Positions 9,217 through 64,000 of a DNA stretch of 64,000 nucleotides are shown here, piece by piece (the stretch's first letter is position 1; each line of letters opens with the position of its first letter). The notes below the pieces were generated by a model. That model had not been told where the DNA came from. It saw only the letters and a program-made list of their open reading frames with translations, and did not search any database. Source of the stretch: Scyliorhinus canicula (Eukaryota); NCBI RefSeq assembly GCF_902713615.1, contig NC_052162.1:118168574-118232573 (forward strand). The letters are read 5' to 3'. Position numbers and translations under genes: made by a program.

Positions 9217-9280
9217 TTTTCAATTGAAGATACTGATCTTGTAATTGAGAATGTAATTGATTTCAGCTACCTCCAACTTA

Positions 9281-9631
9281 CATAGAACATAGAACAGTAC
9301 AGCACAGAACAGGCCCTTCGGCCCTCGATGTTGTGCCGAGCCACAATCACCCTACTCAAACCCACTATCCACCCTATACCCGTAACCCAACAACCCCCCC
9401 CCCCCCTCTTAACCTTACATTTTAGGACACTACGGGCAATTTAGCATGGCCAATCCACCTAACCAGCACATCTTTGGACTGTGGGAGGAAACAGGAGGAG
9501 CACCCGGAGGAAACCCACACACATGGGGAGGACGTGCAGACTCCACACAGACAGTGACCCAGCCGGGAATCGAACCTGGGACCCTGGAGCTGTGAAGCAT
9601 TTATGCTAACCACCATGCTACCGTGCTGCCC
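9281..9631 (-). mobile_element. V-SINE with CR1-type tail
   Basis: Same family as 1075-1422; absent from the duplicate at ~45480. Confidence 0.9.
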
Positions 9632-17535: not shown

Positions 17536-19617
17536 CTTCCTCACATCCCACCCGCCGATAGATTTTGCCTTGAGGGCAGAATTTTGCTGTCCAAAACGTG
17601 GTGAGAACAGAGGATGCATCTATTAAAACCGAAAATGGGTATATTTGAGGTGGTTTGGTTTGGGTTTGAGATATTTTAAATTTCCACATCCCACTCAACC
17701 CAGACCCATCCATTTGTTTTTTTTAAGATAAAATTTGCCTCAAAAGATTTGATTGCCATTTGTCTGCTATGGCTGACCTTAACTTCTTTTTCACAATAGC
17801 ATTGCTAATAGCGCCTTCTGCAATGGTAGTTGTTATTGCAATTAAACATCAAATCAAACACAGGACATAAATAAGTTTAAAACTTTGAGTTAACTGACCT
17901 GCCCGAAAAGCTTGATAAACTCTTATTCAATCCATCTTTAGCCTGATACATCAATATCTGCAGCACATTGTCCATTTTGCACAATTAGATGGACAATCTC
18001 CAACTTTTGTGACCTACTTTGGGAAGTAGGTCTTTGAAGATGTATAGCTCTTGAGCAATCATAGAAAAGTTAAGGTTGTAATGATTACACAAGACATGGA
18101 CATCAGACTCAATGACTGTCTTTTCATTTCTTGACAGACATATATTAGGGTACAAACTTTCAAGTTAGGTCACAATATACAAAATCTGATAAGATCGAGC
18201 TTGTTTGTTGACTTCCCCGACTTAAATGCTCTCTTTTCCATGCATTTGTGAATCTTTGCTGTCGGTGTCTTCATCAGCCTGCATTGGTTCCTCATTGTCG
18301 GATCCAATAAGATTATGGGCAACTCCCTGAGACTGACAAGAAGCATTGCTGTTGTGATCACAGTTATATGCTAGTGCAGCTTCTTGCTTGATAACATTGC
18401 TAAGAGCTCAAAGTTATGCCAGTAAGACTCAAACTGCTACAAATGTTGCTGCTGCTGGTTGTAAAACTGAAAATGACAACACTTTGAGTTTGTCACATCT
18501 GAATGCTTGGAGATTTTCAATGGGTTATCATCGTTTTTAATTTGGTTTTAAAAGGCACTTGCCGAATGGTTTTTCCAAAACCATTTATCACAAGGAGGTA
18601 AATTCCATATGCTCTTTCAAATTTTGGTTAAACATGCTGAGCACTGATATTTGAGTCGTGTTTCGCCGGGTTGTTAATGAGGTCAGGGATTTTAAATAGC
18701 CGGGTGTCAAACATTGGGGAGGTTTGATGCTCTTGTTGTCCCACACCTGCATAAAACCCATTCGCAAGTAACCATGTTTCTCATCCATGATGTTTGGCTG
18801 TTGGGTACAAGGGAATGGTTCCAGGGATGACATAGCCTTGTACCTCAACGTGCCAGGTCAAGGGCTAGCTCTGAAACTGGTGATGCTCTGCCCGATGGTA
18901 CAATATCTAACTTTCCGGCACATGTTATGTCATTCTGGGGGAGGGTAGAGTTGAGTGGCCAGATGTGTATTCTCTGGGGAATGCCGACCACAGTTGTGCC
19001 TATTTACTGATGTGTAAGGGTTGTCTTCTGGGTGGCCAGAAGGGCAATAAACAACTACTAATGGCTCTTGCATGTTGAAACCAGACAGAAGAGACTGTGT
19101 CATGCTGGAGCCCAGGACCCAATAAGCAGCAGTCTAAACACTCACGACTTTTAGTATAACTCAGACATCTGACACCAAGAGTTCTATAGAGATATCCTGA
19201 AGTAACTGTACGCTTCATTGTAGATCAGTTCTGTAAACTACACAAATATAGGCAATGGACTCATGCACCACCCACAAGATCCAGCAGGTTGTCTGTCACA
19301 TAATCTAATGACTTTGGGAAACATTATTTGCACTCTGCAGCTGAGCAAAGGTGCCAGTCCAGGCTCCTACTTATTCTCTGCCGCCACCACCATCTAGTTC
19401 TCTCATTCATGTTCCGTGCAAAGCCCAGTGCATCATCCTCAAACTGACTTTGGGGATGGATGTAAATCCGCTGGTGATAGAGAAGGAGTGAATGATACAG
19501 GGTGCTGTGAGGTGCGATCATTAATTTTGGGGTTCACTGTAATAGCTTAAAAAGAGGAAGACATGTTTGCATGATAACTGCAACAAAACACTTTCAAACT
19601 AATGCTCCATAGCTAAT

Positions 19618-20935
19618 TACATGGCAATAGGAGTGTGTGTGTGTGTGTGACATGGCAATGGGTGTGTGTGTGTGTGACATGGCAATGGGAGTGTGTGTGT
19701 GACATGGCAATGGGAGTGTGTGTGTGACATGGCAATGGGAGTGTGTGTGTGACATGGCAATGGGAGTGTGTGTGTGACATGGCAATGGGAGTGTGTGTGT
19801 GACATGGCAATGGGAGTGTGTGTGTGTGTGTGTGTGACATGGCAATGGGAGTGTGTGTGTGTGTGTGTGTGTGACATGGCAATGGGAGTGTGTGTGTGAC
19901 ATGGCAATGGGGGTGTGTGTGTGTGTGTGACATGGCAATGGGAGTGTGTGTGTGTGTGTGACATGGCAATGGGAGTGTGTGTGTGACATGGCAATGGGAA
20001 TGTGTGTGTGTGTGTGTGTGACATGGCAATGGGAGTGTGTGTGTGTGACATGGCAATGGGAATGTGTGTGTGTGTGTGTGTGACATGGCAATGGGAGTGT
20101 GTGTGTGACATGGCAATGGGAGTGTGTGTGTGTGTGTGTGACATGGCAATGGGAGTGTGTGTGTGACATGGCAATGGGAGTGTGTGTGTGACATGGCAAT
20201 GTGAGTGTGTGTGTGACATGGCAATGGGAGTGTGTGTGTGACATGGCAATGGGTGTGTGTGTGTGACATGGCAATGGGAGTGTGTGTGTGTGTGTGACAT
20301 GGCAATGGGAGTGTGTGTGTGACATGGCAATGGGAGTGTGTGTGTGACATGGCAATGGGTGTGTGTGTGTGTGACATGGCAATGGGAGTGTGTGTGTGTG
20401 TGTGACATGGCAATGGGAGTGTGTGTGTGACATGGCAATGGGAGTGTGTGTGTGACATGGCAATGGGTGTGTGTGTGTGTGACATGGCAATGGGAGTGTG
20501 TGTGTGTGTGTGACATGGCAATGGGAGTGTGTGTGTGACATGGCAATGGGAGTGTGTGTGTGACATGGCAATGGGTGTGTGTGTGTGTGACATGGCAATG
20601 GGAGTGTGTGTGTGACATGGCAATGGGAGTGTGTGTGTGACATGGCAATGGGAGTGTGTGTGTGACATGGCAATGGGAGTGTGTGTGTGACATGGCAATG
20701 GGGGTGTGTGTGTGACATGGCAATAGGAGTGTGTGTGTGTGTGTGTGACATGGCAATGGGAGTGTGTGTGTGACATGGCAATGGGGGTGTGTGTGTGACA
20801 TGGCAATGGGAGTGTGTGTGTGACATGGCAATGGGAGTGAGTGTGTGTGTGACATGGCAATGGGAGTGTGTGTGTGACATGGCAATAGGAGTGTGTGTGT
20901 GTGTGTGACATGGCAATGGGAGTGTGTGTGTGTGT
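19618..20935. repeat. Compound minisatellite GACATGGCAATGGGA(GT)n
   Basis: Dozens of tandem units with a near-constant 15-mer and a variable GT run. Confidence 0.95.
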
Positions 20936-21774
20936 ACTTGTGTGTCTCTGATACACCAGGAAGGAGGCCATTCGGCCCATTGTGCCTGGGCAGGCTCCTT
21001 GAAAGACCGACTCATGTCCGACTGCCCTGATCCTTCCCAACAGTCATTTCTTTCCAACACAAGTATTTATCCAATTCCCCCCTCCTGAGATTTATTATTA
21101 AATCTGCTTCCACCACTCTTTCAGCCAATCCAGATCCATTTTTTCTTCATGTCACCTCTGATTCTTTTACCAAACACCTTCAGACGGGATAGTGAGTGGA
21201 ACAAGGAGAACAGGAATAGGATGATTCTGACCAGCAACGTGGGAAAGACGTTAAGCTTCACCCTGGCCGACTGCCTCTATTGATTTCAGGTGCAAGTCAA
21301 AGGGGAAGTTTGTCAGAATGGGGAGGGGGGAGACTGAAGGAAGGTGGGGAAACCACAAGAGAGGAGAGGGGAGGTAAAATAAAAGAAGAACACAGCTGAT
21401 CCAAAGGGGGGAGGAAGGCGGGGGGGGGGGGGGGGGGCGGGTGGACAACGGGGAAGGGGGAGGAACTATAGACCGATCCAGAGGGCAGCAAAATGTACAT
21501 CGGGTCAGTTACACGAAGGACAAAATAAACCTCTCTGTAAAATAAAGTAAATTAGCACGGGAAATAAAAATGTGATGAGTATATACAACTCTTTATAAAT
21601 ATGAGAAATGCCAATAAAAAGATTTTTTTTTAAAAGAATGGATTCAGACAGGGTTGTTTTCAGGCTTACCTTTTTTCATCCTGCAATGCATATCTTTTGT
21701 GGAATCTGAGTCATAAAGCTGAGGTATTGGATATTTGAGAAGCACAGAAGAATGAGATGCAAAATATCCACCCT

Positions 21775-25922: not shown

Positions 25923-26353
25923 GCCCTCTCCTTCTCTTTCCACAGATGCTGCCGGACCTGCTCAATTTTTCCAGTTCTTTCTGTATCTATGTTAAATTTG
26001 TCTGTGGTGACGGAACACTATTTACTGTCAAGGATAAAATAAATGTCCTTCCTCAGCCTTTGTGGATCATTTCAGTGGAAATGTGCTCTCCCAGGCTCAA
26101 AGAGCAACAGCCCACTGGAAGCAAAGTCTTGAGACCGGCCAGTCCAGCAGAAAGAAACCCTCCGACCCTCCCACTTCACCAAGTGTCAGAATGAACATGG
26201 TTCCGTCCTGGATGTGATTAACAGCAGCAACTGTAGCAGAATCCAACTCCTTCAATGACTTGAGAACTCGTTGGTGTCTCAGCAGGCTGGATAACTGAGT
26301 GAATCCCTTTCCACACTGAGAGCAGGTGAATGGCATCTCTCCGGTGTGAACTC

Positions 26354-26510
26354 GGTTCAGCACACTGGCTAAATCACTGGCTTTTAAAGCAGACCAAGGC
26401 AGGCCAGCAGCACAGTTCAATTCCCGTACCAACCTCCTGAACAGGCGCCGGAATGTGGCGACTAGGGGCTTTTCACAGTAACTACAGTGACAATAGGTGA
26501 TTTTCATTTC
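26354..26510 (+). mobile_element. Short SINE inside ZNF pseudogene 2
   Basis: Same family as 25740-25922. Confidence 0.8.
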
Positions 26511-26528
26511 AGTGTAGATGATGTTCTA

Positions 26529-26687
<159 letters not shown>

Positions 26688-26881
26688 CTAAGTGAATCCC
26701 CTCCCACACACACTGCAGGTGAACGGCCTCTCCCCGGAGTGAACTCTCTGGTGTGTCAGCAGGTTGGTTAATTGAGAGAATCTCTTCCCTCACAGAGCAG
26801 GTGAACGGTCTCTCCCCAGAGTGAACTCGCTGGTGTGTCAGCAGTTGGGGTGAATGACTGAATCCCTAACCACACTCAGAA

Positions 26882-27096
26882 CAGATAGAACATAGATACG
26901 GGCAATTTAGCATGGCCAATCCACCTAACCCACACATCTTTGGACTGTGGGAGGAAACCGGAGCACCCGAAGGAAACCCACGCACACACTGGGAGGACGT
27001 GCAGACTCCGCACAGACAGTGACCCAAGCCGGAATCGAACCTGGGACCCTGGAGCTGTGAAGCATTTATGCTAACCACCATGCTACCGTGCTGCCC
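26882..27096 (-). mobile_element. V-SINE inside ZNF pseudogene 2
   Basis: V-SINE head and core with a shortened tail. Confidence 0.85.
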
Positions 27097-27744
27097 AAAT
27101 GAATGTTCTCTCCCCAGTGTGAACACGTCGATGTGTTTCCAGCACCGATGGGGAGCAGAATCCCTTCCCACAGTCCCCACATTTCCACGGTTTCTTCATG
27201 GTGGCTCTCCAGGTTCGATGATCAGCTGAGTTATCCACACTGAACGTGAGTACGGTTTCTCCCCGCTGTGAATAGTGTGATGTGTTTTCAGGCTGTGTAA
27301 CTGGTTAAAGCTCTTTCCACAGTCAGTGAACTGGAACACTCTCACTCAGATGCCTGGGTCTTGGTAGATTTTCAGCTCAGACTGATGTTTAAAGCCTTTT
27401 GAAGAAGACAGAACAGTAAAATTATTTTTCCTTCTTGATTGAAAGGCCGATGATAATCATGTCCTGATGAATCAAGTGACTGTCAGATCTTCATCTGAGA
27501 TTTAATTTGAGATTTCTGTCTGCAAATCCTCACTTTCTGATGTCCTGTAAAATGAGTTTACAAAAGCCATCACTGTCAGCACAGTATAGAAATTAAGAAC
27601 AGACAATTCTAGTTTCGCTGGAATATTCAGTCCTCTTTCATTCCTCAAAAACTGCAAATCTCCATCCCACACACTCACCCTCCATTCTCACACTGCTGTA
27701 TCTAATATTCACCCTCACAATTCTCCTGAAAGTCTTTCTGCAGC

Positions 27745-28649: not shown

Positions 28650-29400
28650 CCTTAAATGTCAGCCATCTCCAGGGGAATCCAGCCCCTTATCTGTGAACAT
28701 TAGGAAAGAGACCATCCTTTTAGCCAGACAAATAAATGTGGGGCTGATTTAGCACAGGGCCCAATCGCTGGCTTTGAAAGCAGACTGAGGCAGGCCAGCT
28801 GCTCGGTTCAATTCCTGTACCAGCCTCCCCGAACAGGTACTGGAATGTGGCGACATTACAGTAACTTCATTTGAAGCCTACTTGTGACAATAAGCGATTT
28901 CCATTTCATTTTTTCGTGTGTCAAGCTGAGGGACCAAAGGATATCAATGTCTTTAAGAGAGAGCCATGATGTGGAGAGAGAGAGAGAGCCATGATGTTTA
29001 AGAGAGAGAGAGAGACCTGGGCCAAGCTTTCCAGAGTCTGCACCCTCCCTGGATTCACTTCCTTTCCCTTCAGTTGAGGTCAGAATGAGACAATAAATGG
29101 AAAGGGAAGAAAAGAAAGTGTTTTACTCACAGAGGTTGAAAACAGGAGGAAGGTTTAGTCTGTGTGACGCTCAATTATCACTCACACAAAGCCCGCGCTC
29201 TGATTGGCTGGAGAACCAGAGTACCTCCCGTTCTCAAACTTTTTTTATTTGTCAACATCTCAGCCGGGAGGTCAGGAAGCGGGCTCTTTCCCGCATGTGC
29301 TCATCTACCCCCCTTCCCCCACCATTCCCCACCCATGGACATGCGCAGTCCCGGGCCGCCCGCCCGCGCGGCGGATAGAGCGGTTTCCCCAGCGTGGGGG
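28650..29400 (-). promoter_or_regulatory. ZNF pseudogene 2 intron start, exon 1 and CpG-rich promoter
   Basis: Same arm as the other cassettes, donor CCTCT|GTGAGT; CCAAT, CATGCGCA and CpG-rich 29270-29420. Confidence 0.6.
28740..28914 (+). mobile_element. Short SINE
   Basis: Same family as 25740-25922; splits AATGTG|TCAAG of the conserved arm. Confidence 0.8.
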
Positions 29401-31378: not shown

Positions 31379-31972
31379 ACCTGTGTTTGTGGCTGCTCCT
31401 TGTTTGGGGGCAATGCAGGGTGCTGATGTTTTTCTTTTGAACTGATGTTAGTCTCTGTGTAACTGGTGAGGAATTGTATGTTTGCTATCGTCTTATTGTT
31501 TTTTCCCCAGCGGCTGTGTGCTTACCAAATGTGGCCCCTGAAACAGGGGAGTTTGTGTGTGTTCAGCAAACGCGATAGTTTCACTTAGGTAAAAGATCAA
31601 CCAAAATTGGGAACTATTCAAATTTTGATCAAAACGTAATTGCGAAAAACAATGTATTTACCAATTGAAATGAGTTCTTACTAATTACTGATAATGTCCA
31701 CCGGATGTTGCGTTGTAAGTTTCACAGGAGCCACAGTGAGAAGGTTGGTGGGTTTTGTAAATTGGAAGTGACACATGAGCAGCTTGTTGGGCTGTTTCGT
31801 CTCACTGTCGATTTCATGTTCCAGCAAACGACAATCGGTGTTCTGATTGGCTGAAGATTTCTCTTATGTTCATTCTAAACATGGAAGTTTTTATATTTCA
31901 AATGAAAGCTCGGACATGAATATAAAAGGTGAATGATATAGTGTCAGGCGGTATAGCTTTTGCGTGTCAGTT

Positions 31973-32044
31973 TCCCTGGTGGTCTAGTGGTTAGGATTCG
32001 ACGCTCTCACAGCCGTGGCCCGGGTTAGATTCCCGGTCAGGGAA
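31973..32044 (+). tRNA. tRNA-Glu(CTC), probable pseudogene
   Basis: TCCCTGGTGGTCTAGTGG..GGTCAGGGAA. Anticodon-stem mismatches, B-box TTCGA>TTAGA and no T-run terminator. Confidence 0.7.
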
Positions 32045-33240
32045 TGATACATTATTGTTGTCCACAAAACTGTTCAACGAAGCTGTATCGCAGTTTCACA
32101 GAAAGGAGCTCTGCTGGAATCAGGTAATTGACATTTGTTATTTCGCGTGAGAGCTGGCAAAGTTACAAGTGCACAGGTCAACAATAAACACAGAGGCAGG
32201 AAGAAATGGGCTGTGATTGGTGCAAAGGAAGCGAGATTGTGAAGCAGCAGAAATCTGGCTGGTGTTGAGCCAGCTTTTATTGCTCACACAAACAAAATTA
32301 TCTCCCAGATCTGGTTCCAAATCTTGGGTGTGATGACAAGAAAACTTCTAACTGAAATTATTCAGTCCATTGAGGTCACAGGAGCTGAATAAAACAGAAG
32401 AAGCTCAAAGGTAGTGCCACTCTCTGAGGAATTGTGGAAATGTTGCTGGGAGGTTAAGTGAGCTGAATAAAAGCTACCTGCATGTTTCTGAGCCTGTGCT
32501 CGGTGTATTGGGAGGTTTGCTCCTGGTTGGAGTGTCCCCGGGATGGGCAGTAACCAGCAGATTGAAGCTGCAGTCTCCACGTTCTGCTGGCAGCGAGTGA
32601 ATGGAGAGTTTGGGTAAAATCCTGCTGCTTGCCCCTCACTCACCCACTGTGGAGCCGGGCAAGAATTAATCTCATTCAAAACTTGTGGAAGTGTAAATTT
32701 CACAAGCTGTGAGATGACGTATTGTGCTAATGTTTAACAACAAATTGGAACGAGGAAGCTTTGCCTCATAGTTACAGATGAGTACGTTTTAATGTTCTGC
32801 ACAGTATGAAACAGGGGAGTTTGTGTATGTTCAGCAAACGTGATAGTTTCACTTCGGTAAAAGATCAACAAAAATTGGGAACTATGCAAATTGTGATCAA
32901 AACGTAATTGCAAAAAACAATGTATTTAACAATTGAAATGAGTTCTTACTAATTACTGATAATGTCCGCCGGATGTTGCGTTGTAAGTTTCACAGGAGCC
33001 ACAGTGAGAAGGTTGGTGGATTTTGTAAATTGGAAGTGACACATGAGCAGCTTGTTGGGCTGTTTCGTCTCACTGTCGATTTCATGTTCCAGCAAACGAC
33101 AATCGGTGTTCTGATCGGCTGAAGATTTCTCTTATGTTCATTCTAAACATGGAAGTTTGTATATTTCTAATGAAAACTCGGACATGAATATAAAAGGTGA
33201 ATGATATAGTGTCAGGCGGTATAACTTTTGCGTGTCAGCT

Positions 33241-33312
33241 TCCCTGGTGGTCTAGTGGTTAGGATTCGGCGTTTTCATCGCCGTGGCCCGGGTTCGATTC
33301 CCGGTCAGGGAA
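33241..33312 (+). tRNA. tRNA-Glu(TTC), apparently intact
   Basis: Perfect CGGCG/CGCCG anticodon stem, loop TT-TTC-AT, intact A/B boxes, followed by TTTTT. Confidence 0.9.
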
Positions 33313-34502
33313 TGATAAATTTTTGTTGTCCACAAAACTGTTCAACGAAGCTGTATCGCAGTTTCACAGAAAGGAGCTCTGCTAGAATCAGTTAATTGAC
33401 ATTTGCAGTTTCGCGTGAGAGCTGGCAAAGTTACAAGTGCATAGGTCAACAATAAACATAGAGGCAGGAAGAAATGGGCCGTGATTGGCTGCAAACAAAG
33501 AGAGATTATGAAGCAGCAGAAATCTGGCCGGTGTTGAGCCAGCTTTTATTGCTCACACAAACAAAATTATCTCCCAGACTGGTTCCAAATCTTGGGTGTG
33601 ATGACAAGAAAACTTCTAACTGAAATTATTCAGTCCATTGAGGTCACAGGAGCTGAATAAAACAGAAGAAGCTCAAAGGCAGTGCCACTCACTGAGGAAT
33701 TGTGGAAATGGGAGGTTAAGTGAGCTGAATATAAGCTACCTGCATGTTTCTGAGCCTGTGCTCAGTGTATTGGGAGGTTTGCTCCTGGTTGGAGTGTCCC
33801 CGGGATGGGCAGTAACCAGCAGATTGAAGCTGCAGTCTCCACGTTCTGCTGGCAGCGAGTGAATGGAGAGTTTGGGTAAAATCCGGCTGCTTGCCCCTCA
33901 CTCACCCACTGTGGAGCCGGGCAAGAATTAATCTCATTCAAAACTTGTGGAAGTGTAAATTTCACAAGGCTGTGAGATGACGTATTGTGCTAATGTTTAA
34001 CAACAAATTGGAACGAGGAAGCTTTGCCTCATAGTTACAGATGAGTACGTTTTAATGTTCTGCACAGTATGAAACAGGGGAGTTTGTGTGTGTTCAGCAA
34101 ACGTGATAGTTTCACTTCGGTAAAAGATCAACCAAAATTGGGAACTATTCAAATTTTGATGAAAACGTAATTGCGAAAAACAATGTATTTAACAATTGAA
34201 ATTAGTTCTTACTAATTACTGATAATGTCCGCCGGATGTTGCGTTGTAAGTTTCACAGGAGCCACAGTGAGAAGGTTGGTGGGTTTTGTAAATTGGAAGT
34301 GACACAGAGCAGCTTGTTGGGCTGTTTCGTCTCACTGTCGATTTCATGTTCCAGCAAACGACAATCGGTGTTCTGATCGGCTGAAGATTTCTCTTATGTT
34401 CATTCTAAACATGGAAGTTTGTATATTTCTAATGAAAACTCGGACATGAATATAAAAGGTGAATGATATAGTGTCAGGCGGTATAACTTTCGCGTGTCAG
34501 TT

Positions 34503-34574
34503 TCCCTGGTGGTCTAGTGATTAGGATTCGGCGCTTTCACCGCCACGGCCCGGGTTCGATTCCCGGTCAGGGAA
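34503..34574 (+). tRNA. tRNA-Glu(TTC), variant
   Basis: Loop CT-TTC-AC; D-loop GG>GA and one anticodon-stem mismatch; T6 terminator. Confidence 0.75.
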
Positions 34575-35765
34575 TGATCAATTTTTGTTGTCCACAAAAC
34601 TGTTCAACAAAGCTGTATTGCAGTTTCACAGAAAGGAGCTCTGCTAGAATCAGATAATTGACATTTGTAGTTTCGCATGAGAGCTGGCAAAGTTACAAAT
34701 GCACAGGTCAACAATAAACACAGAGGCAGGAAGAAATGGGCAGTGATTGGCTGCAAACGAAGAGAGATTATGAAGCAGCAGAAATCTGGCCGATGTTGAG
34801 CCAGATTTTATTGCTCACACAAACAAAATTACCTCCCAGATCTGGTTCCAAATCTTGGGTGTGATGACAGGAAAACTTCTAACTGAAATTATTCAGTCTA
34901 TTGAGGTCACAGGAGCTGAATGAAACAGAAGAAGCTCAAAGGTAGTGCCGCTCACTGAGGAATTGTGGAAATGGGAGGTTAAGTGAGCTGAATATAAGCT
35001 ACCTGCATGTTTCTGAGCCTGTGCTCGGTGTATTGGGAGGTTTGCTCCTGGTTGGAGTGTCCCCGGGATGGGCAGTAACCAGCAGATTGAAGCTGCAGTC
35101 TCCGCGTTCTGCTGGCAGCGAGTGAATGGAGAGTTTGGGTAAAATCCGGCTGCTTGCCCCTCACTCACCCACTGTGGAGCCGGGCAAGAATTAATCTCAT
35201 TCATACCTCCTGGAAGTGTAAATGTCACAAGCTGTGAGATGACGTATTGTGCTAATGTTTAACAACAAATTGGAACGAGGAAGCTTTGCCTCATAGTTAC
35301 AGATGAGTAAGTTTTAATGTTCTGCACAGTATAAAACAGGGGAGTTTGTGTATGTTCAGCAAACGTGATAGTTTCACTTCGGTAAAAGATCAACAGAAAT
35401 TGGGAACTATTCAAATTTTGATCAAAACGTAATTGCGAAAACCAATGCATTTAACAATTGAAATGAGTTCTTACTAATTACTGATAATGTCCCCCGGATG
35501 TTGCGTTGTAAGTTTCACAGGAGCCACAGTGAGAAGGTTGGTGGGTTTTGTAAATTGGAAGTGACACATGAGCAGCTTGTTGGGCTGTTTCGTCTCACTG
35601 TCGATTTCATGTTTCAGTAAACAGCAATCGGTGTTGTGATTGGCTGAAGATGTCACTTGTGTTCATTCTAAACATGTAATTTTGTATATTTCTAATGAAA
35701 ACTCGGACATGAAAATAAAAGGTGAATCATATACTGTCAGGCGGTTTAAATTTTGCTCGTCAGTT

Positions 35766-35836
35766 TTATGGCGGTCTGGTGGTTAGGTTTCGGCATTTTC
35801 ACCGCCGCGGCGTGGGTTCGATTACCGGCCAGGGAA
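35766..35836 (+). pseudogene. tRNA-Glu(TTC) pseudogene
   Basis: Acceptor stem disrupted (TTATGG start) and multiple substitutions. Confidence 0.7.
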
Positions 35837-36200
35837 TGATGAATTATTGTTGTCCACCAAACTGTTCAACGAAGCTGTATCACAGTTTCACAGAAAAGAG
35901 CTCTCCCTTAAATACTTAAGCAAAATTTGTCGTTTCAAGTCAGAGCTGGAAAGGTTGCAAGTGTAGCAGGTCAACAATAAACACAGAGGCAGGAAGAAAT
36001 GGACAGCGATTGGCTGCAAAGGAAGAGAGATTATGAAGCAGCGGAAATCTGGGTGGTGTTGGGCCAGCTTTTATTGCTCGCCCAGACAAAATTATCTCCC
36101 AGATCTGGGTCCAAATCTTGGGTGTGATGACAAGAAAACATCAAACTGAAATTATTCAGTCCATTGAGGTCACAGGAGCTGAATACAACAGAAGATGTTT

Positions 36201-50007: not shown

Positions 50008-53000
50008 TCACTCTCCCGCAAAGAAGTCAATAAATGGTTGCCACCTCCGGGTGAACCCCTGCACAGAACCCCTCAAGGCGAACTTGATTTTTTCCATCCC
50101 CAGGAAACTCGACATGTCCGCAAGCCACCACTCCGTCTTCGGGGGCTTTGAGTCCCTCCACGCCAATAATATTCGTCGCCGGGCTATCAGGGAAGCAAAG
50201 GCCAGCACATCGGCCTCTTTCTCCCCCTGGACGCCCGGGTCTTCCGAAACCCCAAAAATTGCCACCCCTGGGCTCATCACCACCCTTGTTTTTAGCACCT
50301 GGGACATGACCCCCGCAAATCCCTCCCAGTACCCCCTCAGCTCAGGGCATGCCCAAAACATGTGAACATGGTTCGCTGGTCCTCCCGCGCACCTAGCGCA
50401 TTTGTCCTCTATCCCGAAAAATTTGCTCATCCGAGCCACCGTCATATGGGCCCGGTGAACGACCTTAAATTGGATCAGCCCGAGCCTAGCACATGTCGCG
50501 GTCGAGTTTACCCTACTCAGGGCCTCTGCCCACAGCCCATCCTCCATTTCCCCGCCTAGCTCCTCCTCCCATTTAAGTTTCAGTTCCTCTGTCTGGGACC
50601 CTTCCTCCCTCATGAGCACCTTATAAATACCCGAGACTCTACCCTCCCCTTCATCCCTCCCAGAGACTATTCTGTCTAGGATCCCCATTGGCGGGAGGCG
50701 CGGGAAAGATGGGACCTGTCTACGAACAAAGTCCCGCAACTGTAGGTATCTAAAATCATTTCCCCTTACCACCCCAAATTTCTCCTCCAAGCTCCTCAAA
50801 CTCGCGAAGCTCCCTTCCAGGAACATATCACCCACCCTTCCCGCCCCTGCTTGCCGCCATACTCGGAACCCCCCATCCATACTGCCGGGGGCAAACCGAT
50901 GGTTGTCGCAGATTGGCGCCCAGACAGACGCCCCCATCTCCCCCACATGCCTCCTCCACTGGCCCCATATCCGCAGGGTCGCCACCACTACCGGGCTGGT
51001 GGTGTACTTGGCTGGCGGCAGCGGTAGAGGAGCCGTGACCAGGGCTTCCAAACTGGAGCCCCTGCACGAAGCCGCCTCCACCCGCTCCCAAATAGACCCC
51101 GTACCCACCATCCACTTCCTTATCATAGCGATGTTGGCCGCCCAGTAATAATTGACCAGACTCGGCAAAGCCAGCCCTCCCTCGCTGCGGTTCCTCTCCA
51201 ACATCGCCTTCTTTACCCGCGGAGACTTTCCCGCCCAGACAAAGCTCATGATCAGCCCGTTAACTCTTTTGAAGAAGGACTGTGGGATAAAGATCGGGAG
51301 GCACTGAAAAATAAACAAAAATCGAGGGAGGATTGTCATCTTTACAGTCTGCACCCTCCCTGCCAGCGACAGCGGGAGTGCGTCCCATCTCCGAAACTCT
51401 CCCTTCATTTGCTCCACCACCCTGGCCAAATTTAACTTATGCAGCCTGCCCCAGTCTCGTGCCACCTGGATTCCCAAATACCGGAAATTTTCCTCAACCA
51501 GCCTAAACGGTAGCCCTCTCAATCTGTTCTCCTGGCCCCTTGCCTGGACCACAAACATTTCACTCTTGACCGTATTTAATTTGTATCCTGAGAACTGGCC
51601 GAACTCCCTCAGCATTCCCAGTATAGTTCCCATCCCGGCCACTGGGTCCGACACGTACAGGAGCAGGTCGTCTGCATAAAGAGAAACCCTGTGTTCAACC
51701 CCGCCCCTCACCATCCCCTTCCAACCCTCTGCGGCTCTCAGCGCCATCGGCTCTATGGCCAGCGCAAACAGCAGCGGGGAGAGCGGGCAGCCCTGCCTGG
51801 TCCCTCGGTACAACCTAAAGTACTCCGACACTTCTCTGTTAGTCCTGACGCTGGCCCTCGGGGCCTGATATAATAATTTGATCCAATCCACCAATCCCTC
51901 CCCGAACCCAAACCGTCCGAGCACCTCCCATAGATAGTCCCACTCTACCCGGTCAAAGGCCTTCTCGGCGTCCATTGCCACCACTACCTCCACCTCTCTA
52001 CCCGCCGGGGGCATCATTATCACGTTGAGCAATCTCCTCAGATTGGCCGCCAGCTGCCGACCTTTAACGAACCCAGTTTGATCCTCCCCAATCACCTCCG
52101 GTACACAGTCCTCCATTCTCCCCGCCAGTACCTTTGCCAGGAGCTTGGCGTCTACATTAATCAGGGAGATTGGCCTGTAGGACCCGCACACCTCCGGGTC
52201 TTTACCCCGCTTCAATATCAGAGATATGGTGGCTTGTGACATTGTCGGCGGCAGGGTCCCTCTGTCCCTTGCCTCATTGAAAACCCTCGCCAAGACCGGG
52301 CCCACCAGCTCAGAGAACTTCCTATAAAACTCTACTGGGTATCCATCTGGCCCCGGGGACTTCCCCGACTGCATGGCCTTTAGGCCCCCCAATACCTCCT
52401 CTACTCTAATCGGGGCGCCCAGCTCTTCCACTTGCCCCCCCCCAACTGTTGGGAATGTTAACCCGTCCAGAAACCTTTTCATCCCCTCCGGTTCTTCCGG
52501 CGGCTCCGAAGTATACAGCTTACGATAGAAGTCCCGGAATACCCTATTCAATTCTGCCGGATCCTCCACTTTGCGCCCCCCCTCGTCCCTCACTCTACCT
52601 ATTTCCCTGGCCGCCTCCCTCCTCCTGAGTTGCTGCGCTAACAGTCTGCTAGCCTTTTCCCCATACTCGTACACCACTCCCCTCGCCTTCCTAAGCTGTT
52701 CCACGGCCCTGCTCGTGGATAGTGCCCCCAGTTCCGCCTGTAGCCTCCGCCTTTCCCTGAGTAAAACCTCCCCCGGGGACTCCGCGTGCTCTTCATCTAT
52801 CCGGCCCATTTCCCTGACCAATCTATCCATCTCTGCCCGGTCTGCCTTGGCTTTGTGGGCCCCAATTGAAATCAGCTCCCCCCGAACTACTGCCTTTAGC
52901 GCCTCCCACACGGTCGCCGCTGAGACCTCCCCAGTGTCATTCACCTGCAGGTAATTTTTTATACATTTCCGAAGCCTCTCGCAGATCCCCTCCTCCGACA

Positions 53001-53766
53001 GCAGTCCCACATCTAGCCTCCATTGCGGGCGTTGATAACTCGCTCCCCCGAACTGCAGGTCCACCCAATGCGGGGCATGGTCTGAAATGGTAATTGCTGA
53101 GTATTCCGTGTTCTTTACCTCCCCCATACAGTCCCTGCTTATTACAAAGAAATCTATCCTGGAATATACTTTATGGACGTGCGAGTAAAACGAGTAGCCC
53201 CTTCCTGTTGGCTGTCCCTCTCTCCAGGGGTCCACTGCCCCCATTTGCCCCATAAACCCTTTCAGCTCCCTTGCCATTGCTGAGAGTCTACCCGTTCTGG
53301 GACCCGACCGATCCAAAGTCGGGTCAAGGACCATGTTAAAGTCCCCTCCCATTATTAGCTTGCGAGAATCCAAGTCCAGGATCTTCCCCAGCACTCTTTT
53401 AATAAAGTCCACGTCATCCCAGTTCGGGGCATATATATTCACCAGCACCACCCTTCTCCCCTCCAGTCTGCCCCGTACCATCAGGTATCTGCCCCCCCTG
53501 TCTGCAGATATGCCCTCTGCCTCAAATTGCACGCGCTTGTTGATCATGATTGCCACCCCTCTGGACTTCGAGTCCAAGTCCGAGTGGAAGACCTGGCTAA
53601 TCCAGCCCTTCCTTAGCCTGGTCTGGTCTGACACTTTCAGATGTGTCTCCTGCAACATAATTACCTCCGCCCTCAGGGCCCGCAAGTGCGCGAACACCCG
53701 CGCCCTCTTAACCGGCCCATTCAGTCCCTTGACGTTCCAGGTGATCAGCCTGGTCGGGGGGCACAT
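50008..53766 (-). CDS. L1 ORF2: APE endonuclease, reverse transcriptase and CCHC domain (1252 aa)
   Basis: ITWNVKGLN, LQETH, GGDFN, SRIDFF, SDH; QGCPLSP, YADD, YLGI; CARC..HMFWAC. No stops. Confidence 0.95.
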   Translation of the reverse strand: MCPPTRLITWNVKGLNGPVKRARVFAHLRALRAEVIMLQETHLKVSDQTRLRKGWISQVFHSDLDSKSRGVAIMINKRVQFEAEGISADRGGRYLMVRGRLEGRRVVLVNIYAPNWDDVDFIKRVLGKILDLDSRKLIMGGDFNMVLDPTLDRSGPRTGRLSAMARELKGFMGQMGAVDPWREGQPTGRGYSFYSHVHKVYSRIDFFVISRDCMGEVKNTEYSAITISDHAPHWVDLQFGGASYQRPQWRLDVGLLSEEGICERLRKCIKNYLQVNDTGEVSAATVWEALKAVVRGELISIGAHKAKADRAEMDRLVREMGRIDEEHAESPGEVLLRERRRLQAELGALSTSRAVEQLRKARGVVYEYGEKASRLLAQQLRRREAAREIGRVRDEGGRKVEDPAELNRVFRDFYRKLYTSEPPEEPEGMKRFLDGLTFPTVGGGQVEELGAPIRVEEVLGGLKAMQSGKSPGPDGYPVEFYRKFSELVGPVLARVFNEARDRGTLPPTMSQATISLILKRGKDPEVCGSYRPISLINVDAKLLAKVLAGRMEDCVPEVIGEDQTGFVKGRQLAANLRRLLNVIMMPPAGREVEVVVAMDAEKAFDRVEWDYLWEVLGRFGFGEGLVDWIKLLYQAPRASVRTNREVSEYFRLYRGTRQGCPLSPLLFALAIEPMALRAAEGWKGMVRGGVEHRVSLYADDLLLYVSDPVAGMGTILGMLREFGQFSGYKLNTVKSEMFVVQARGQENRLRGLPFRLVEENFRYLGIQVARDWGRLHKLNLARVVEQMKGEFRRWDALPLSLAGRVQTVKMTILPRFLFIFQCLPIFIPQSFFKRVNGLIMSFVWAGKSPRVKKAMLERNRSEGGLALPSLVNYYWAANIAMIRKWMVGTGSIWERVEAASCRGSSLEALVTAPLPLPPAKYTTSPVVVATLRIWGQWRRHVGEMGASVWAPICDNHRFAPGSMDGGFRVWRQAGAGRVGDMFLEGSFASLRSLEEKFGVVRGNDFRYLQLRDFVRRQVPSFPRLPPMGILDRIVSGRDEGEGRVSGIYKVLMREEGSQTEELKLKWEEELGGEMEDGLWAEALSRVNSTATCARLGLIQFKVVHRAHMTVARMSKFFGIEDKCARCAGGPANHVHMFWACPELRGYWEGFAGVMSQVLKTRVVMSPGVAIFGVSEDPGVQGEKEADVLAFASLIARRRILLAWRDSKPPKTEWWLADMSSFLGMEKIKFALRGSVQGFTRRWQPFIDFFAGE

Positions 53767-54328: not shown

Positions 54329-55209
54329 CTAACTCGCGTCCTTGGGGCCTCCTTTCGGGACCAGCCCCAGGTCCCTCACAAAATCCATTGCTTCTTCGGG
54401 CTTGGAGAAGTAGTGGTGTTGACCCTGGTGCGTGACCCATAGCCGGGCTGGGAACAGCAGACCAAACTTCACGTGCTTCTTGAACAGCACCTCCTTGACA
54501 TTCTTAAAGGCTGCTCGCCGCCGAGCCACCTCCTGGCTTAGATCCTGATAAATGCGGAGAACACTGTTGTTCCACGTGCTGCTCCTGGCGCTCTTTGCCC
54601 ACTGCAGCACCCGCTCCTTGTCCACGAACCTGTGGAACCTAATCACCATCGGGCGGGGGGTCCACCCGGCCGCCCCTGCCTTGCCTGCACTCTGTGTGCC
54701 CCCTCCAGCTCCAACGGTCGTGGAAAGGCTTCGGCTCCCATCAGCTGCTTCAGCAGGTCTGCTACAAACGCTGCAGCATCAGCTCCCTCCGCCCCCTCCG
54801 GGAGGCCGACCATCCTCAGATTGTTCCTGCGGATTCTATTCTCCAGCTCCTCCACTCTGTCCAGCAGTCTTCTCTGCCGCTCTTTCAGGCCGTCCACTTC
54901 TACCGCTGCAACCGTTTGCGCATCCGCTTGCTCCTCCACCGCCTCTCCCAGGTCCTTAACTTTAACATCCTGGGCGTCCATCCTCTGGTTCAGCTGATCC
55001 ACCGCTTTCTGGATTGGGTCCAAGCTGTCCCGCTTCAGCGCTTCAAAACTGGACTTCATTACCTGGAGCATGTTATCCAGCGCCAACTGGATTGCTGAGT
55101 CCGGGGTCCGTGTGTCCGCCATCTTAGGTCCCAGGTAATTTTCTTCAGGTCCTTGTCTCTGTCCCTTTTTCTCCTTCTTCTTCTGCCTTCTGGAATCCCG
55201 CTGTTCCAT
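54329..55209 (-). CDS. L1 ORF1 (coiled coil + RRM + CTD) with one frameshift at ~54655
   Basis: ELENRIRRNNLRMVGLPEG, AHR, IRFHRFVDKERVL, IYQDLS and FGLLFPARL, split over two frames at a G6 run. Confidence 0.85.
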
Positions 55210-58612: not shown

Positions 58613-59581
58613 TCATAAAATCCTGTCCCACACAGAGCAGGTGAATGGCCTCTCCCCAGTGTGAACTCGCTGATGTCTCAGCAGGTTGGATGACTGTCTG
58701 AATCCCTTCCCACACACAGAGCAGGTGAATGGCTTCTCCCTGGTGTGAACTCGCTGGTGTGACTTCAGTTTGGATAACACAGTGAATCCCTTCGCACACT
58801 GAGAGCAGGTGAATGGCCTCTCCCCAGTGTGAAGTCGCTGATGTTTCTTCCGGTTAAATGAATCACTGAATGCCTTCCCACACTGAAAGCAGGAGAATGG
58901 TCTCTCTCCAGTGTGGACTCTCTGATGTTTCCGTAGGGTGGATGAATCACTGAATCCTTCCCCACACTGAGAGCAGGTGAACGGCCTCTCCCCAGTGTGA
59001 ACTCGCTGGTGACTCTGAAGGTGGGATAACCGAGTGAATCCCTTCCCACACTGAGAGCAGATGAATGGCTTCTTCCGAGGGCAAATTTTCTGGTGTAACT
59101 GCAGGTGGGATAACTGAGTGAATTCCTTCCCACACTGACGGCAGGTTAAATGCCTCTCCCCACTGTTAACTCGCTGGTGTGATTGCAGGTGCGATAACTG
59201 AGAGAATCCCTTCCCACACTGAGAGCAGTTGAATGGCCTCTCGCCAGTGTGAATTCTCTCATGTGTTCGCAGAGTGTATGACTGAATGAATCTCTTCCCA
59301 CACTGAAAGCAGGTGAATGGCTTCTCCCCAGTGTGAACTCGCTGATGTCTCTGCAGGGTTGATGAATGTCTGAATCCCTTCCCACACTGAGAGCAGGTGA
59401 ATGGCTTCTCCCCAGTGTGAACTCGCTGATGTCTCTGCAGGGTGCATGCACGACTGAATCCCTTCCCACACACAGAGCAGGTGAATGGACTCTCCCCAGT
59501 GTGAATGCGTTGATGAATCTCCAACAGAGAAGGGGCTCTGTATCCCTTCCCGCAGTCCCCACATTTCCACGGTTTCTCCAT
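58613..59581 (-). CDS. C2H2 zinc-finger protein (ZNF gene 5): 322 aa, 11 finger units (two atypical) plus a frameshifted 12th
   Basis: MEKPWKC ATG at 59581; acceptor TTTTCCAG| at 59891; donor at 61082. Confidence 0.9.
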
Positions 59582-59950
59582 GCTTTGGGTCTCCTCGTGT
59601 CTGCCCAGGTCGGACAATCACACTGTTGAAGTCTTATTCACTGTGTAACTGGTTCAAGCTCTTTCCACAGTCAGTGCTCTGGAACACTCTCACTCGGGTG
59701 TGTGTGTGTCTCGGTGCTTTTCCAGTCACACTGATGTTTAAAATTTTTTGAAGCTAACAGATCGGACAAACATTTCTCCTTCTAGATTCAAAGGCCAATA
59801 ATATTCAGGCCCCAACGAATCCAGTGAATCTGACAGATCTCAGACGTGATTTTTGAGATTTCTGTCTGTAATTCCTCCTCTTCTATTATCCTGGAAAAGG
59901 AATCATCACTGTCAGTACAGAATCATAGAAGTTACATAAGAACATAATGA

Positions 59951-60119
59951 AAAAATGAAAATCGTTTATTGTCACGAGTAGGCTTCAATGAAGTTACTGT
60001 GAAAAGTCCCTAGTCGCCACATTCCGGCGCCTGTCCGGGGAGGCTGGTACGGGAATCGAACCGTGCTGCTGGCCTGCTTTAAAAGCCAGCGATTTAGCCC
60101 AGTGAGCTAAACCAGCCCC
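59951..60119 (-). mobile_element. Short SINE in the gene 5 intron
   Basis: Same family as 25740-25922. Confidence 0.85.
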
Positions 60120-60123
60120 TATA

Positions 60124-60389
60124 GAGCGTTCACACCGGGGAGAGGCCATTCATCTGCTCTGTGTGTGATAAGGGATTTGCTCAATTATCCAGCCTGCTGA
60201 ACCACAATGTCACTCACACCAAGAACGGGCCCTTTAAATGCTCTGACTGCAGGAAGGGTTTCAAAAGTTCCCAGTTACTGATGTCCCACCAGCGCATTCA
60301 CTCTGAGGAGAGACCGTTCAGCTGCTCTCACTGCACAAAGAGCTTTAGAACCTCATCCAACCTGATCAAACACGAGCGACGTCACACCT
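60124..60389 (+). pseudogene. Three-finger ZNF fragment, antisense in the gene 5 intron
   Basis: CSVC..HNVTH, CSDC..HQRIH and CSHC..HERRH; close match to the reverse complement of ~3131-3392. Confidence 0.85.
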
Positions 60390-60710
60390 AACAATCCCAC
60401 CCTGGTCATTCTCTCTTCCAATCTCTTCCATTGGGCAAAAGATACAAAAGTCTGAGAACACGAACTTATAGATTCAAAAACAGCTTCTTCCCTACTGTTA
60501 CCAGACACCTGAATGACTCTATGAACTGAACTCTCCATGAATCTTAACCACTATGCAGCACTACACTCCGAATGCTTCACCCAATGTCTATGTATTTAAA
60601 TTGTGTATTTATCTTATGATCTATGTTTTTCATGTATGGAATGAGCTGGCTGCACTGTACGGAGAACAATACTTTTCACGATACCTCGGAACATGTGACA
60701 ATAAATCTAA
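60390..60710 (+). mobile_element. Rex1/Babar LINE 3' end
   Basis: HPGHSLFQSLPLGKRYKSLRTRTYRFKNSFFP..RHLN; ends ..ACATGTGACAATAAA. Confidence 0.75.
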
Positions 60711-60879
60711 TTACAGTACTATGTTACAAAACTAGAAATAATATTAAATGTAATTTAGTACAGAACTACAAACAATATATCTAATCTATATCATGTAAGG
60801 ACATAAGACATATCTCTGTCCTATATTAACTTACTGTTCCCTTAAATGTCGGCCATCTCTTGCGAAAACTAGGCCTTAA

Positions 60880-61760
60880 ATTGTGAACATTAGGAAAGAG
60901 ACCACCCTTTTAGCCAGACAAATAAATGTGTCAAGCTGAGGGAGCAAAGGATGTCAATGTCTTTAAGAGAGAGACCTGGATTCACTTCCTTTCCCTTCAG
61001 TTGCTGCAAGTGACCAATTGAAGGTCAGAACGAGAAAAGAAATGGAAACGGGGGGGGGGGGGGGGGGGAGTGTTTTACTCACAGATGTTGGAGACAGGAG
61101 GACGTTTTAGTCCAACTTCCGTTTTATGTCGTCACAATGGACCCCTGCCTGAATCAACCAATAGAAATCAGCTTCTCAGAGGTGACGTCTCCTGGTTCCA
61201 GTGCGCAGGTTCGGCGCCGCTCATTCTTCCTCCTCACCCGACACCACCTCCAGACAAGGTTTCCAGGCAACCGGCTGACAGCTCCGGCCAGAGCGAGAAG
61301 CCGCTCAGTGATCTCCCGCCCGCCAGCGACCCGGTACTGCTCATGTCCAAGGGAGAAGGGAAGCTGCGCATGTGCAGGAGAGAGCCCGCCCCCGGACCTG
61401 CCAGCGGACGTATTGACCAATGGAAACATTTGGGGGACCGGAAGAACTCTGGGAGTTCAGCCAATCAGACGGCAAGTTTTGTGTGACTGAAGATTGAGCT
61501 TCACACAGACAAAGTCCCTCCTGTCTCCACCATCTGGGAGTAAAACACTTTCTTTTCTCCCCCTTTCCATTTCTTTTCTCATTTTGACCTTCAATTGGTT
61601 ACTTGCAGCAACTGAAGGGAAAGGAAGTGAATCCAGGGAGGGTGCAGACTCTGGAAATCTTGGCCCAGGTCTCTCTCAAAGACATTGACATCCTTTGCTC
61701 CCTCAGCTTGACACATTTATTTGTCTGACTAAAAGGATGGTCTCTTTCTTCATGTTCACA
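60880..61760. promoter_or_regulatory. Head-to-head ZNF promoter cassette D
   Basis: Inverted arms ~60884-61100 and ~61517-61760 around the same core (TGACGTC, GCGCATGTGC, CCGGAAG, CCAAT). Confidence 0.8.
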
Positions 61761-61849
61761 GTTAAAGGACTGGTTTCCCTAGTCAATCAGATCCCACACT
61801 GCCTGATTTCCAATCCAATCTATTTAAAGGTCCCAGAAGCCTGGCTCCA

Positions 61850-62480
61850 ACCTTAAATGTTGTTCTGTTGCTGTCAGTAACATTGTTTTGGAACTCACTC
61901 GCACCACCACATAGGCAGCCATCAACATGCATGCATCATAAAGATGCCTGAGAGTTTCCTGCCATGGTACCAATAAAACACGGCAGCTTCTGCCTTCAGG
62001 TGGAGACAACCCGACTTGTACAAAACGGATCGAACTGAGAAGCACCATACACTCGGAAACATTGTTCAAAACATAGACACACTTATTTAACTTCCAAAGA
62101 CTTCCATTTACATCTGGCTCATTTTTAGGACGTTGCAGAAACCCTGCCCTCGGGAAGTGATTCCCCAGCACAACTGCAGCTTTTATGTTTCTTGACTTAC
62201 ATTCCCAAGAAAATGTTGTGAAAAGGACCAAAGAAATGTCAAATTGACCTTTCCCACTGTGGGTGGGTCCACTCTGACCTCTTGTCTCCTAAGGGTTTTT
62301 CAAATCCCTCAGCCACTAACTTCGCCTTGGACTTGTAAGTTCCATCCGGTTGGGCCTTTTCTGTGCAGATCCATTGATGTGATGATGCTGGCTGAGCCCC
62401 ATCAGGGACCTCTGAACTCACGCCAAACTCTCTTCTACTGCCAAACTCTTTCTGTTTAGCCTCCCGTACGGCTTTATCTC
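61850..62480 (-). mobile_element. Copia/Ty1-type reverse transcriptase fragment
   Basis: DGTYKSKAKLVAEGFE (cf. KARLVAKGF), NIKAA (cf. DIKAAFL) and LWKLNKCVYVL (cf. LKKSLYGL). Confidence 0.65.
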
Positions 62481-63378
62481 CTCATTTGTCGGCAGCAACA
62501 AAACCCTCACAGTCACGGGGACTTCAGCATCGCCTCAAACATATCCTTGGTATAAAACTGACAATTCCCTGTGTGAAATGGTCCAGTTATTGAAATTGCA
62601 TCGAATAGAGATCAAAGAAACAGACCAGAAATGGATCGCTGAGGTTCTTTGGAGGTCCCAGTGGTCAGTCAGACTGAATTAAACACAGGTGGTATAAAAC
62701 AAATAATACACTGTCCACGGGGACTTTCCTTTAATCAGAGCCGTCAGTGGATCTTGTTCCTAACACCAGGTTGTTGTGGGACAAATGTCACTTGGAGTCC
62801 AGAGTTGGCGAAAGTTTGGGATTCTTTATTACAAGCATGCAGGTGAATGCTTCAGCAAACTGAAGCATCTGAAGGAGTAGTTATAATAACATACATTTAT
62901 ACACAGTACAGTTATAGCTGGCCAGGCTGTTTTGTCGGCAAGTTAGTGGCAAAGTACAGGACGTAAAGGAAACAACTTGAAAACAGCTCACACTTATTGG
63001 CTATAGTGACTTCATCTCTCACAAAACACATCTTGGAAAATACCCTGTAAAAAGAATCAAAGTAGAATGAAACTCAATAGACAGCACAAAAACAGGTCAT
63101 TGTACCCAGTGTCAGTGTATATATTCCCCATGAGCCTATCGCTTCTCTCTGTCAGCAGGTCTTTCTATTCCTTTCTCTCTTGTGTCTGCAACTTGCTAAG
63201 TGCATTCATGCTGTTTTCCTCAACCAGTCCCTGTGGCAGGAAGTTCCACACCTTCTGGATAAAGACATTGAATCTAACCAGTACTATCTTGTGTGGCCAA
63301 AGAGCAATGCTGCCTCTTTTCTCAATTTCCTGCAGAGGCTGAATCATTGTTGATGAAAAAGCGTTGAGCCGGGCAGCA

Positions 63379-64000
63379 TGTGGTGATCCAACCACTGTAT
63401 ATATGTGTGTTTGCAGTAGGGGGATGTATGGCTGTACCTGTATTACAGGTTTCTCCGGTAAGCCCCTGCCGGCTAGCTCCGCCCATAGGGAGTTGTATAA
63501 ATATTCGTAAGCTTCACTGAGATGCCATTCTACAGCTGCCGCCGGAGGAATGACATCTCACTGTAATAACGCCTCTTTTGTACTTCACTCGAGTCTTTGA
63601 GTACAATTGTTAGAGCCACAATTTATTACAGTGAGATTTTCCTTACACCATAGACATCAGGATTAAACCTGACCGCCTGCAGCTGGATCCGCAGTCGCCA
63701 CACGCCAGGAGAGACTTTGTTCACTGGCTTGCAGTTTTCGAGGCCGACATCTCTTCAGTGGACCCTCCAACTTCAGAGGCTCAGAAATGACAGCTTCTTT
63801 AGTCAAGACTCAGCTCCAGCGTGTTTCCGCTAATTCGAGATGCGCCTGACTACGCCCGGGCCATGGAACTGCTCAAGAGACATCTACTCTCTACTCGCGT
63901 CCAACAGCCGTGTGAGTCAATTGAGGACTTTTGGAGGGCCCTTATACCTCTAATACGAGACTGCGACTGCCAGGCCCTCACAGCCACAGAACATTCCGAC
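63379..64000 (+). mobile_element. Gypsy-like LTR (63379-63630) plus degenerate gag start, running off the window
   Basis: TG..CA with TATAAA, then (M>I)DIRIKPDRLQLDPQSPHARRDFVHWLAVFEA and ESIEDFWRAL..LIRDCDC. Confidence 0.6.

Follow-up and report, generated by a model that had tools for sequence, protein, structure and literature searches.

The question raised by this locus is why two zinc-finger (ZNF) genes that point in opposite directions should be served by promoter cores that point in the same direction. Within the window, by which is meant the whole stretch of 64,000 nt of the Scyliorhinus canicula genome analysed here (NC_052162.1:118,168,574-118,232,573, forward strand), genes 4 (+) and 5 (-) are opposite to each other, with second exons starting at 39355 (+) and 59890 (-), and they share kilobases of 3' flank in collinear inverted blocks that are unique in the window. 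Yet the core motif CCAGACAAGGTTTCCAGGCAACCGGCTGAC, for which no occurrence is expected in shuffled sequence, is found in two exact copies that are both on the plus strand (38614-38643 and 61250-61279). If the two ends of the asymmetric core are called A and B, genes 1 and 4 (and gene 2 as well) are read from the B end and gene 5 from the A end, and the GT splice donor lies to the right of the core at locus 4 but to its left at locus 5. The preliminary description of this DNA was accurate on all these points. Its explanation was that genes 4 and 5 are inverted duplicates and that a crossover between the two arms flanking the core had inverted the core of the sister of locus 4. As argued below, the apparent flip is probably a difference in which side of a two-way promoter has kept a live gene. 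A physical inversion of the promoter at locus 5, which we hold to be rather unlikely, is needless as an explanation and lacks specific support, the core/arm junctions being standard and both arms of locus 5 being of live type.

Architecture of the promoter cassette

Self-comparison of the window revealed four copies of a cassette in which an asymmetric, CpG-rich and TATA-less core (415-480 bp) is placed between a 260-bp arm and an inverted copy of that arm. In each arm, which points outward, the final 19 nt of a non-coding exon 1 are joined to a splice donor and to ~240 nt from the start of intron 1. The arms pair as inverted repeats at locus 5 (60866-61101 with 61517-61776) and at locus 4 (38214-38429 with 38933-39180), with 77-97% complementarity depending on the segment, and the two arms of locus 5 are 85-91% alike. 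The end of exon 1 and the donor, CCTCCTGTCTCCAACATCT followed by GTGAGT, are perfect at 38933-38964 (+) and 61070-61101 (-), and the mirror copy at 61517-61548 (+) has GG for GT.

The junctions between core and arms are identical across cassettes, the A end reading caggagg/a.gttttagtc. By pattern match only, the core contains, in this order, CCAAT, half-CRE, the X-box-like palindrome GTTTCCAGGCAAC, NRF1-like GCGCATG, CCAAT, ETS CCGGAAG and CCAAT, and this order is constant in the cores of cassettes 1, 4 and 5. The set of motifs is typical of bidirectional CpG promoters, and a TATA box is absent. The cores have a GC content of 0.55-0.57 and an observed/expected CpG ratio of 0.58-0.73 (window 0.43, arms 0-0.17).

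Conservation is highest outside the core. The outer 155 bp of the arms, in which CpG is zero or nearly zero, are 93.5-97.5% identical among six arms, those on dead sides included, whereas the neighbouring cores, introns and exons are 70-81% alike (cores 70-76%, or 50-58% for the diverged core of cassette 2; 5'UTR exons 71-81%). These conserved outer blocks are found at 60866-60990, 61600-61776, 38214-38350, 39020-39180, 7573-7740 and 28676-29076. The summed word depth in DNA run X1 is 6000-10000 on the arms versus ~17-25 on unique sequence, from which it follows that the arms exist in some hundreds of copies at an identity of at least 95% and that the cassette family is very large. Conservation of the CpG-free outer arms suggests that the element is under selection or intense gene conversion, and a binding platform, a boundary element and a gene-conversion hotspot are candidate roles for the outer block.

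The inner part of the arm is decayed in the A-side arms of cassettes 4 and 1, where identity falls to 66-74% and a deletion is present. A separate observation concerns the dead donors, all three of which carry the same T-to-G change at position +2 of the intron (catctGGgag), namely those at 61536-61537, in the region of 38436-38437 (left arm of cassette 4) and at 8318-8322 (right arm of cassette 1). This change creates CTCCCAGATG on the opposite strand. Three independent and identical changes seem unlikely, and shared descent, conversion among dead arms or selection for the motif may account for them.

Two other identities for the cassette were considered and rejected. A DNA transposon or foldback element with terminal inverted repeats does not fit a homology that, at loci 1, 2, 4 and 5, extends past the arms and into the intron of the family, nor a copy number that is several-hundred-fold for the arms while most of the core is near single-copy at an identity of at least 95%; no target-site duplication was seen at the cassette ends. 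A structured RNA or miRNA within the arms was dismissed on the grounds that the match to mir-3914 in Rfam is only sub-threshold (21 bits versus a gathering score of 97, E 0.2), and RNA folds of the arms are not significant (z -1.8 and -0.7).

Genes on the two sides of the core

The genes associated with these cassettes form a finger-only C2H2 zinc-finger family with TGEKP-type linkers and no effector domain. Genes 4 and 5 match only zf-C2H2 and zf-H2C2_2 in Pfam (E 1e-58 to 2e-82), in agreement with their ORF translations, and the same search found no KRAB, SCAN or BTB domain in either.

At cassette 1 (7573-8345) the core is on the minus strand (7840-8299). Its B-side arm (7573-7839), with a donor on the minus strand, serves gene 1 (3281-4666, minus), and its A-side arm is a stub (8300-8345) that is cut off and reads GG, with no A-side gene seen. 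Cassette 2 (28676 to ~29560), whose diverged core is also on the minus strand, has the remnant of gene 2 on its B side (26244-27733, minus) and again no visible gene on its A side; a SINE has inserted into its B-side arm (28676-29149), the donor of which is on the minus strand. Elsewhere in the window, a 1.4-kb tandem repeat (19594-21060) with a period of ~25-30 bp and 87-90% identity contains long His/Thr/Pro-rich ORFs on the minus strand and is probably a minisatellite rather than a gene.

Cassette 4 (38214-39180), whose core (38453-38932) runs from A to B on the plus strand, differs in having recognizable genes on both sides. On the B side, its right arm, 4R (38933-39180), has a live donor at 38952-38953 and is followed by exon 2 of gene 4 (39355-40474, +), of which 39713-40474 is finger-only C2H2 coding sequence. 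On the A side, the left arm, 4L (38214-38452), has a decayed inner part and GG at the donor position, and it abuts a decayed and truncated ZNF gene on the minus strand, g3 (36973-38213), which was recognized by tblastn and by blastn to the units of genes 1, 2 and 4. This gene retains an intron of the family type, a start near 37738 that resembles that of exon 2, and a remnant of its fingers (37324-36973 by blastn; 36920-37282, minus, left of cassette 4, when the protein of gene 5 was the tblastn query), and it has a SINE insert. Between the finger remnant and 4L, the sequence shows homology to both intron and exon 2 as found in genes 1, 2 and 4. The order at locus 4 is g3, 4L, core (A to B), 4R and gene 4, that is a head-to-head pair in which g3 (-) and gene 4 (+) diverge from a single cassette, and the region they share (0.97 kb) stays under 1 kb. 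The truncated 3' side of g3 is abutted by a tandem array (31539-36195) of ~3.7 units of 1263 bp with 93-94% identity, which had initially been labelled a tRNA-Glu array.

Genes 1, 2 and 4 are found at the B end of their cores, and g3 and gene 5 at the A end. Gene 5 has the same place at cassette 5 as g3 has at cassette 4, and at locus 5 the A-side gene alone is left. Since g3 occupies the A side of locus 4, gene 5 is in a normal position for this family.

Transcription of gene 5 from cassette 5

The left, A-side arm of cassette 5, 5L (60866-61101, minus), was delimited by self-comparison and is the source of a splice seen in RNA. Exon 1 of gene 5 ends in it with 19 nt (61101-61083), followed by a live GT donor (61082-61081) at which intron 1 begins, and the arm is marked by a 36-bp deletion and a 22-nt run of G on the plus strand. 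The run, at 61054-61075 (C on the strand of gene 5), stands in place of the pyrimidine stretch usually present 13 nt into intron 1, and DNA contigs break at it. The asymmetric core (61102-61516), oriented from A to B on the plus strand, has a GC content of 0.57, a CpG observed/expected ratio of 0.73 and no TATA box, and the minus-strand transcript of its A half (61102 to at least 61256) is exon 1 of gene 5. The right, B-side arm, 5R (61517-61786, plus, with the inverted-arm match extending to 61776), is of live type in sequence, yet its donor is GG (61536-61537). Homology to the family ends ~20 nt outside the conserved block of this arm, and neither tblastn nor blastn found ZNF-like or family-like sequence to its right, in 61787-64000.

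Gene 5 itself has an intron 1 (59891-61082, minus) with GT..AG ends that is supported by RNA, and an exon 2 (58613-59890, minus) in which the 5'UTR starts at 59890 and the finger-only C2H2 coding sequence spans 59581-58613. The intron contains a SINE (~59953-60120) and, adjoining it, a ZNF/Rex1-like insert (~60124-60710). Part of this insert is a three-finger ZNF-like fragment on the plus strand (tblastn match 60128-60454); the preliminary description had read the insert as a piece of ZNF fused to the 3' end of Rex1.

Reads were mapped to 59650-62400 from two DNA runs on different samples (X1 and X4), from RNA contigs (X13) and from raw oligo-dT RNA reads (X22); those falling on the multi-copy arms lack locus specificity. 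A joint from 59889 to 61082 (CT..AC on the plus strand, equivalent to GT..AG on the minus strand) is present in an X13 contig and in a raw X22 read, and is absent from both DNA runs. The X13 contig consists of 34 nt of exon 2 of gene 5 followed by 61082-61256, which means that gene 5 is spliced from the donor in its left arm and that its exon 1 is at least 175 nt long and corresponds to the A half of the core in reverse. The contig ends where the multi-copy centre of the core begins, placing the start site at or beyond 61256. Transcription from cassette 5 in the A direction is thus shown, and the orientation of the core in the assembly is confirmed by RNA of an animal from another study. The claim that gene 5 has a different first exon from gene 4 and uses the donor on the other side is borne out by this splice (61082 to 59890); core inversion as the cause is not.

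All four flank/arm and arm/core junctions of cassette 5 are present in both DNA samples. DNA contigs stop inside the repeated arms and none bridges a whole arm, which makes any polymorphism in core orientation unreadable from X1 and X4. No joint with a change of strand occurs among the 15 joints listed of 27 found, k-mer contigs being unable to bridge an arm. In the B half of the core (61288-61567), 5-8 differences over ~180-280 positions were seen in both DNA samples at single-copy depth, which could reflect either an allelic divergence of 2-3%, a high value, or a very close paralogue.

One live side of a two-way cassette or an inverted core

How closely loci 4 and 5 are related depends on the part that is compared. 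Their 3' flanks are inverted and collinear in two blocks, 40475-42368 with 58612-56772 and 42429-43385 with 48770-47814, so that the flank of gene 4 (40475-43385) forms a tail-to-tail inverted repeat with that of gene 5. These blocks are unique in the window and are separated by transposable element insertions. One insertion, in the arm of the repeat on the side of gene 5, is an apparently intact L1-type ORF2 of 1252 aa with endonuclease and reverse transcriptase (50008-53766, minus), with a likely ORF1 upstream (54643-55209, minus). Identity between the two loci is two-tiered, with 78-82% for 5'UTR, coding sequence and proximal flank, the flank beside the genes standing at 82%, and 86-93% farther out. 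By sequence, then, loci 4 and 5 are marked as a special pair by their 3' flank only. The gene bodies do not single them out: exon 2 of gene 4 is 81.4% identical to that of gene 5 and 80.1% to that of gene 1 (78.5% between genes 5 and 1), and the maximum-likelihood tree of exon 2 is a star with no supported fork. The cores behave similarly, core 4 being 76.2% identical to core 5 and 75.5% to core 1. The view of genes 4 and 5 as inverted duplicates is borne out by the flank and gains no support from gene bodies and cores, which are no closer to each other than either is to those of locus 1.

Core 5 is moreover heterogeneous. Its central ~350 bp are closest to core 4, and the last ~60 nt before 5R side with core 2 rather than core 4 in many states as well as in two deletions. 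Core 5 is thus a mosaic of two lineages, which points to gene conversion among cassettes. In the arms, the donor segment of 5L is identical to that of 4R (32/32), and 5R departs from it by two substitutions, of which one abolishes the donor. Gene relatedness and core side look uncoupled, with gene 2 (B) grouping with g3 (A) and gene 4 (B) with gene 5 (A). With three informative arm columns, a star-like exon-2 tree and a mosaic core, the separate trees of core, arms and exon 2 that had been proposed as a check are uninformative within one window.

These observations are probably best accounted for by a two-way promoter cassette in which a TATA-less asymmetric core lies between mirror arms, each of which supplies the end of exon 1, a donor and the start of the intron. 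With both arms so equipped, a gene could be driven from either end. Cassette 5 would once have served two genes, and its B-side partner would have been lost at a breakpoint near 61786, after which the B-side donor would have changed from GT to GG; loci 1, 2 and 4 would be the mirror case. Genes 4 and 5 would be alike because they are neighbours, tail to tail, in an array built of head-to-head units with 3' flanks that make up an inverted repeat, and conversion among many paralogues would have blurred the histories of genes and cores. In favour of this two-way reading are the single architecture with identical core/arm junctions in all four cassettes, the A-side gene of locus 4 with its family intron and exon 2, the fact that 5R is only two substitutions away from a live donor in its inner 32 nt, and the B-end piece of exon 1 that is contiguous with 5R as in standard cassettes. 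Since two live-type arms would have been needed in cassette 5 or its ancestor, this was presumably a two-gene cassette, and loss of a partner explains the picture without any flip. Use of the cassette in the A direction is observed in RNA, and use in the B direction is predicted from the sequence. Three points speak against this reading. Genes 4 and 5 share a unique and collinear inverted 3' flank of about 2-3 kb; on a simple reading this marks them as inverted duplicates, and had the whole unit been duplicated in inverse orientation, its core should be inverted with it. The start of exon 2 of gene 5 is nearer to gene 4 (25/26 bases) than to g3 (20/26). Finally, no B-side gene or remnant is visible to the right of 5R, up to position 64000.

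The shared flank gives some weight to a physical inversion, in which locus 5 would be an inverted duplicate of the whole locus-4 unit whose core was later turned through its inverted arms. The turn might have been effected by an intrachromatid crossover or by repair of a broken core on the template of another cassette that paired through the mirror arms the other way round, although we consider either course a minority possibility. The 260-bp arms would be a plausible substrate, being 85-91% alike within locus 5 and 93-97% across loci in their outer 155 bp, and the affinity of the centre of core 5 to core 4 would be expected; the mosaic state of core 5 indicates that recombination between cassettes occurs, and the uncoupling of gene relatedness from core side is in keeping with it. 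However, had a copy of cassette 4 been flipped by a crossover in the well-conserved outer arms, its decayed inner arm would have moved together with the A end and should now face gene 5; the arm that does so is the live 5L, with its perfect donor. A crossover within the 32-nt inner edge would be compatible with this, though improbable. Nor were the breakpoints or chimeric arms expected from an exchange found: both arms of locus 5 are of live type throughout, and the six arms, with only three informative columns to show one, reveal no switch point. In addition, core 4 is overall about as near to core 1 as to core 5, core 5 resembles core 2 at its B end, an A-side gene exists at locus 4 without any flip, and the joints listed include none with a change of strand (again 15 of 27, from contigs that cannot bridge an arm). 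In a more general form, the mirror arms would let homology-directed events, whether arm-to-arm crossover or repair of a broken core from another cassette, reinstall a core either way round, so that core orientation and first-exon usage would be evolutionarily labile across a family of roughly a thousand members, and the uncoupled gene relatedness and the mosaic core 5 would be traces of it. We regard this generalization as doubtful.

The shared flank would also be accounted for if a gene-4-like unit (arm, intron, gene and 3' flank) had been placed, as an inverted copy, on the A side of an unrelated cassette that was already there, by inverted duplication or a long gene-conversion tract with one end within the highly conserved arm. 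The arms are indeed the best-conserved sequence of the region (93-97%), core 5 shows no special likeness to core 4 at its B end, and 5L, which is of live type, matches 4R at every base of the 32-nt donor segment. Such a transfer, which present data do not separate from the two-way cassette, seems improbable to us, as the tract would have to exceed 4 kb unless a complex template switch took place, and no junction can be located. That the core was simply mis-oriented during assembly is barely credible: short inverted repeats can confuse assemblers and no DNA contig bridges a whole arm, but an RNA contig from a different study links exon 2 of gene 5 directly with the A half of the core, read in the direction of that gene, the four flank/arm and arm/core junctions recur in two DNA samples, and a cassette of ~0.9 kb should be well within one long read.

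Comparison with known promoter and repeat systems

A literature search returned nothing on this cassette or on ZNF clusters of the catshark. If the plain reading is right, locus 5 would be another copy of an undescribed but ordinary two-way promoter cassette, and what it adds is direct RNA evidence for use of the cassette in the A direction. The closest parallel is with the bidirectional CpG-island promoters of vertebrates, which likewise consist of a short, TATA-less and CpG-enriched region with CCAAT, NRF1-like, ETS and CRE motifs between divergent genes; the head-to-head pair at locus 4 and transcription from the A end at locus 5 match this pattern. The shark element differs in that its 260-bp mirror arms duplicate the end of exon 1, the donor and the start of the intron on both sides, in that the outer 155 bp of these arms are CpG-free and far better conserved (93-97%) than the core (70-76%) and the genes, and in that the unit has been amplified hundreds of times.

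Segments that flip-flop between inverted repeats are known from sex-chromosome palindromes (where the spacer inverts), plastid inverted repeats and the yeast 2-micron plasmid. The catshark cassette resembles these systems in that a unique segment between inverted repeats could be turned by recombination, as the preliminary description supposed. Its arms are different, being only ~260 bp long and 85-91% alike within the locus, and neither two orientations at one locus nor an opposite sister copy was seen. If cores do flip through their arms, this would be a vertebrate case in which recombination between inverted repeats reassigns promoters; were cores reinstalled either way round across the family, which we think unlikely, it would amount to a recurrent, built-in means by which the halves of the promoter are allotted anew among ZNF genes.

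As for the genes, they are reminiscent of the KRAB-ZNF clusters of tetrapods, which are also fast-duplicating clustered C2H2 arrays with many dead copies and divergent fingers. Unlike these, the shark genes have no KRAB, SCAN or BTB domain, their coding sequence is contained in one exon that follows a non-coding exon 1, and they are arranged around two-way cassettes.
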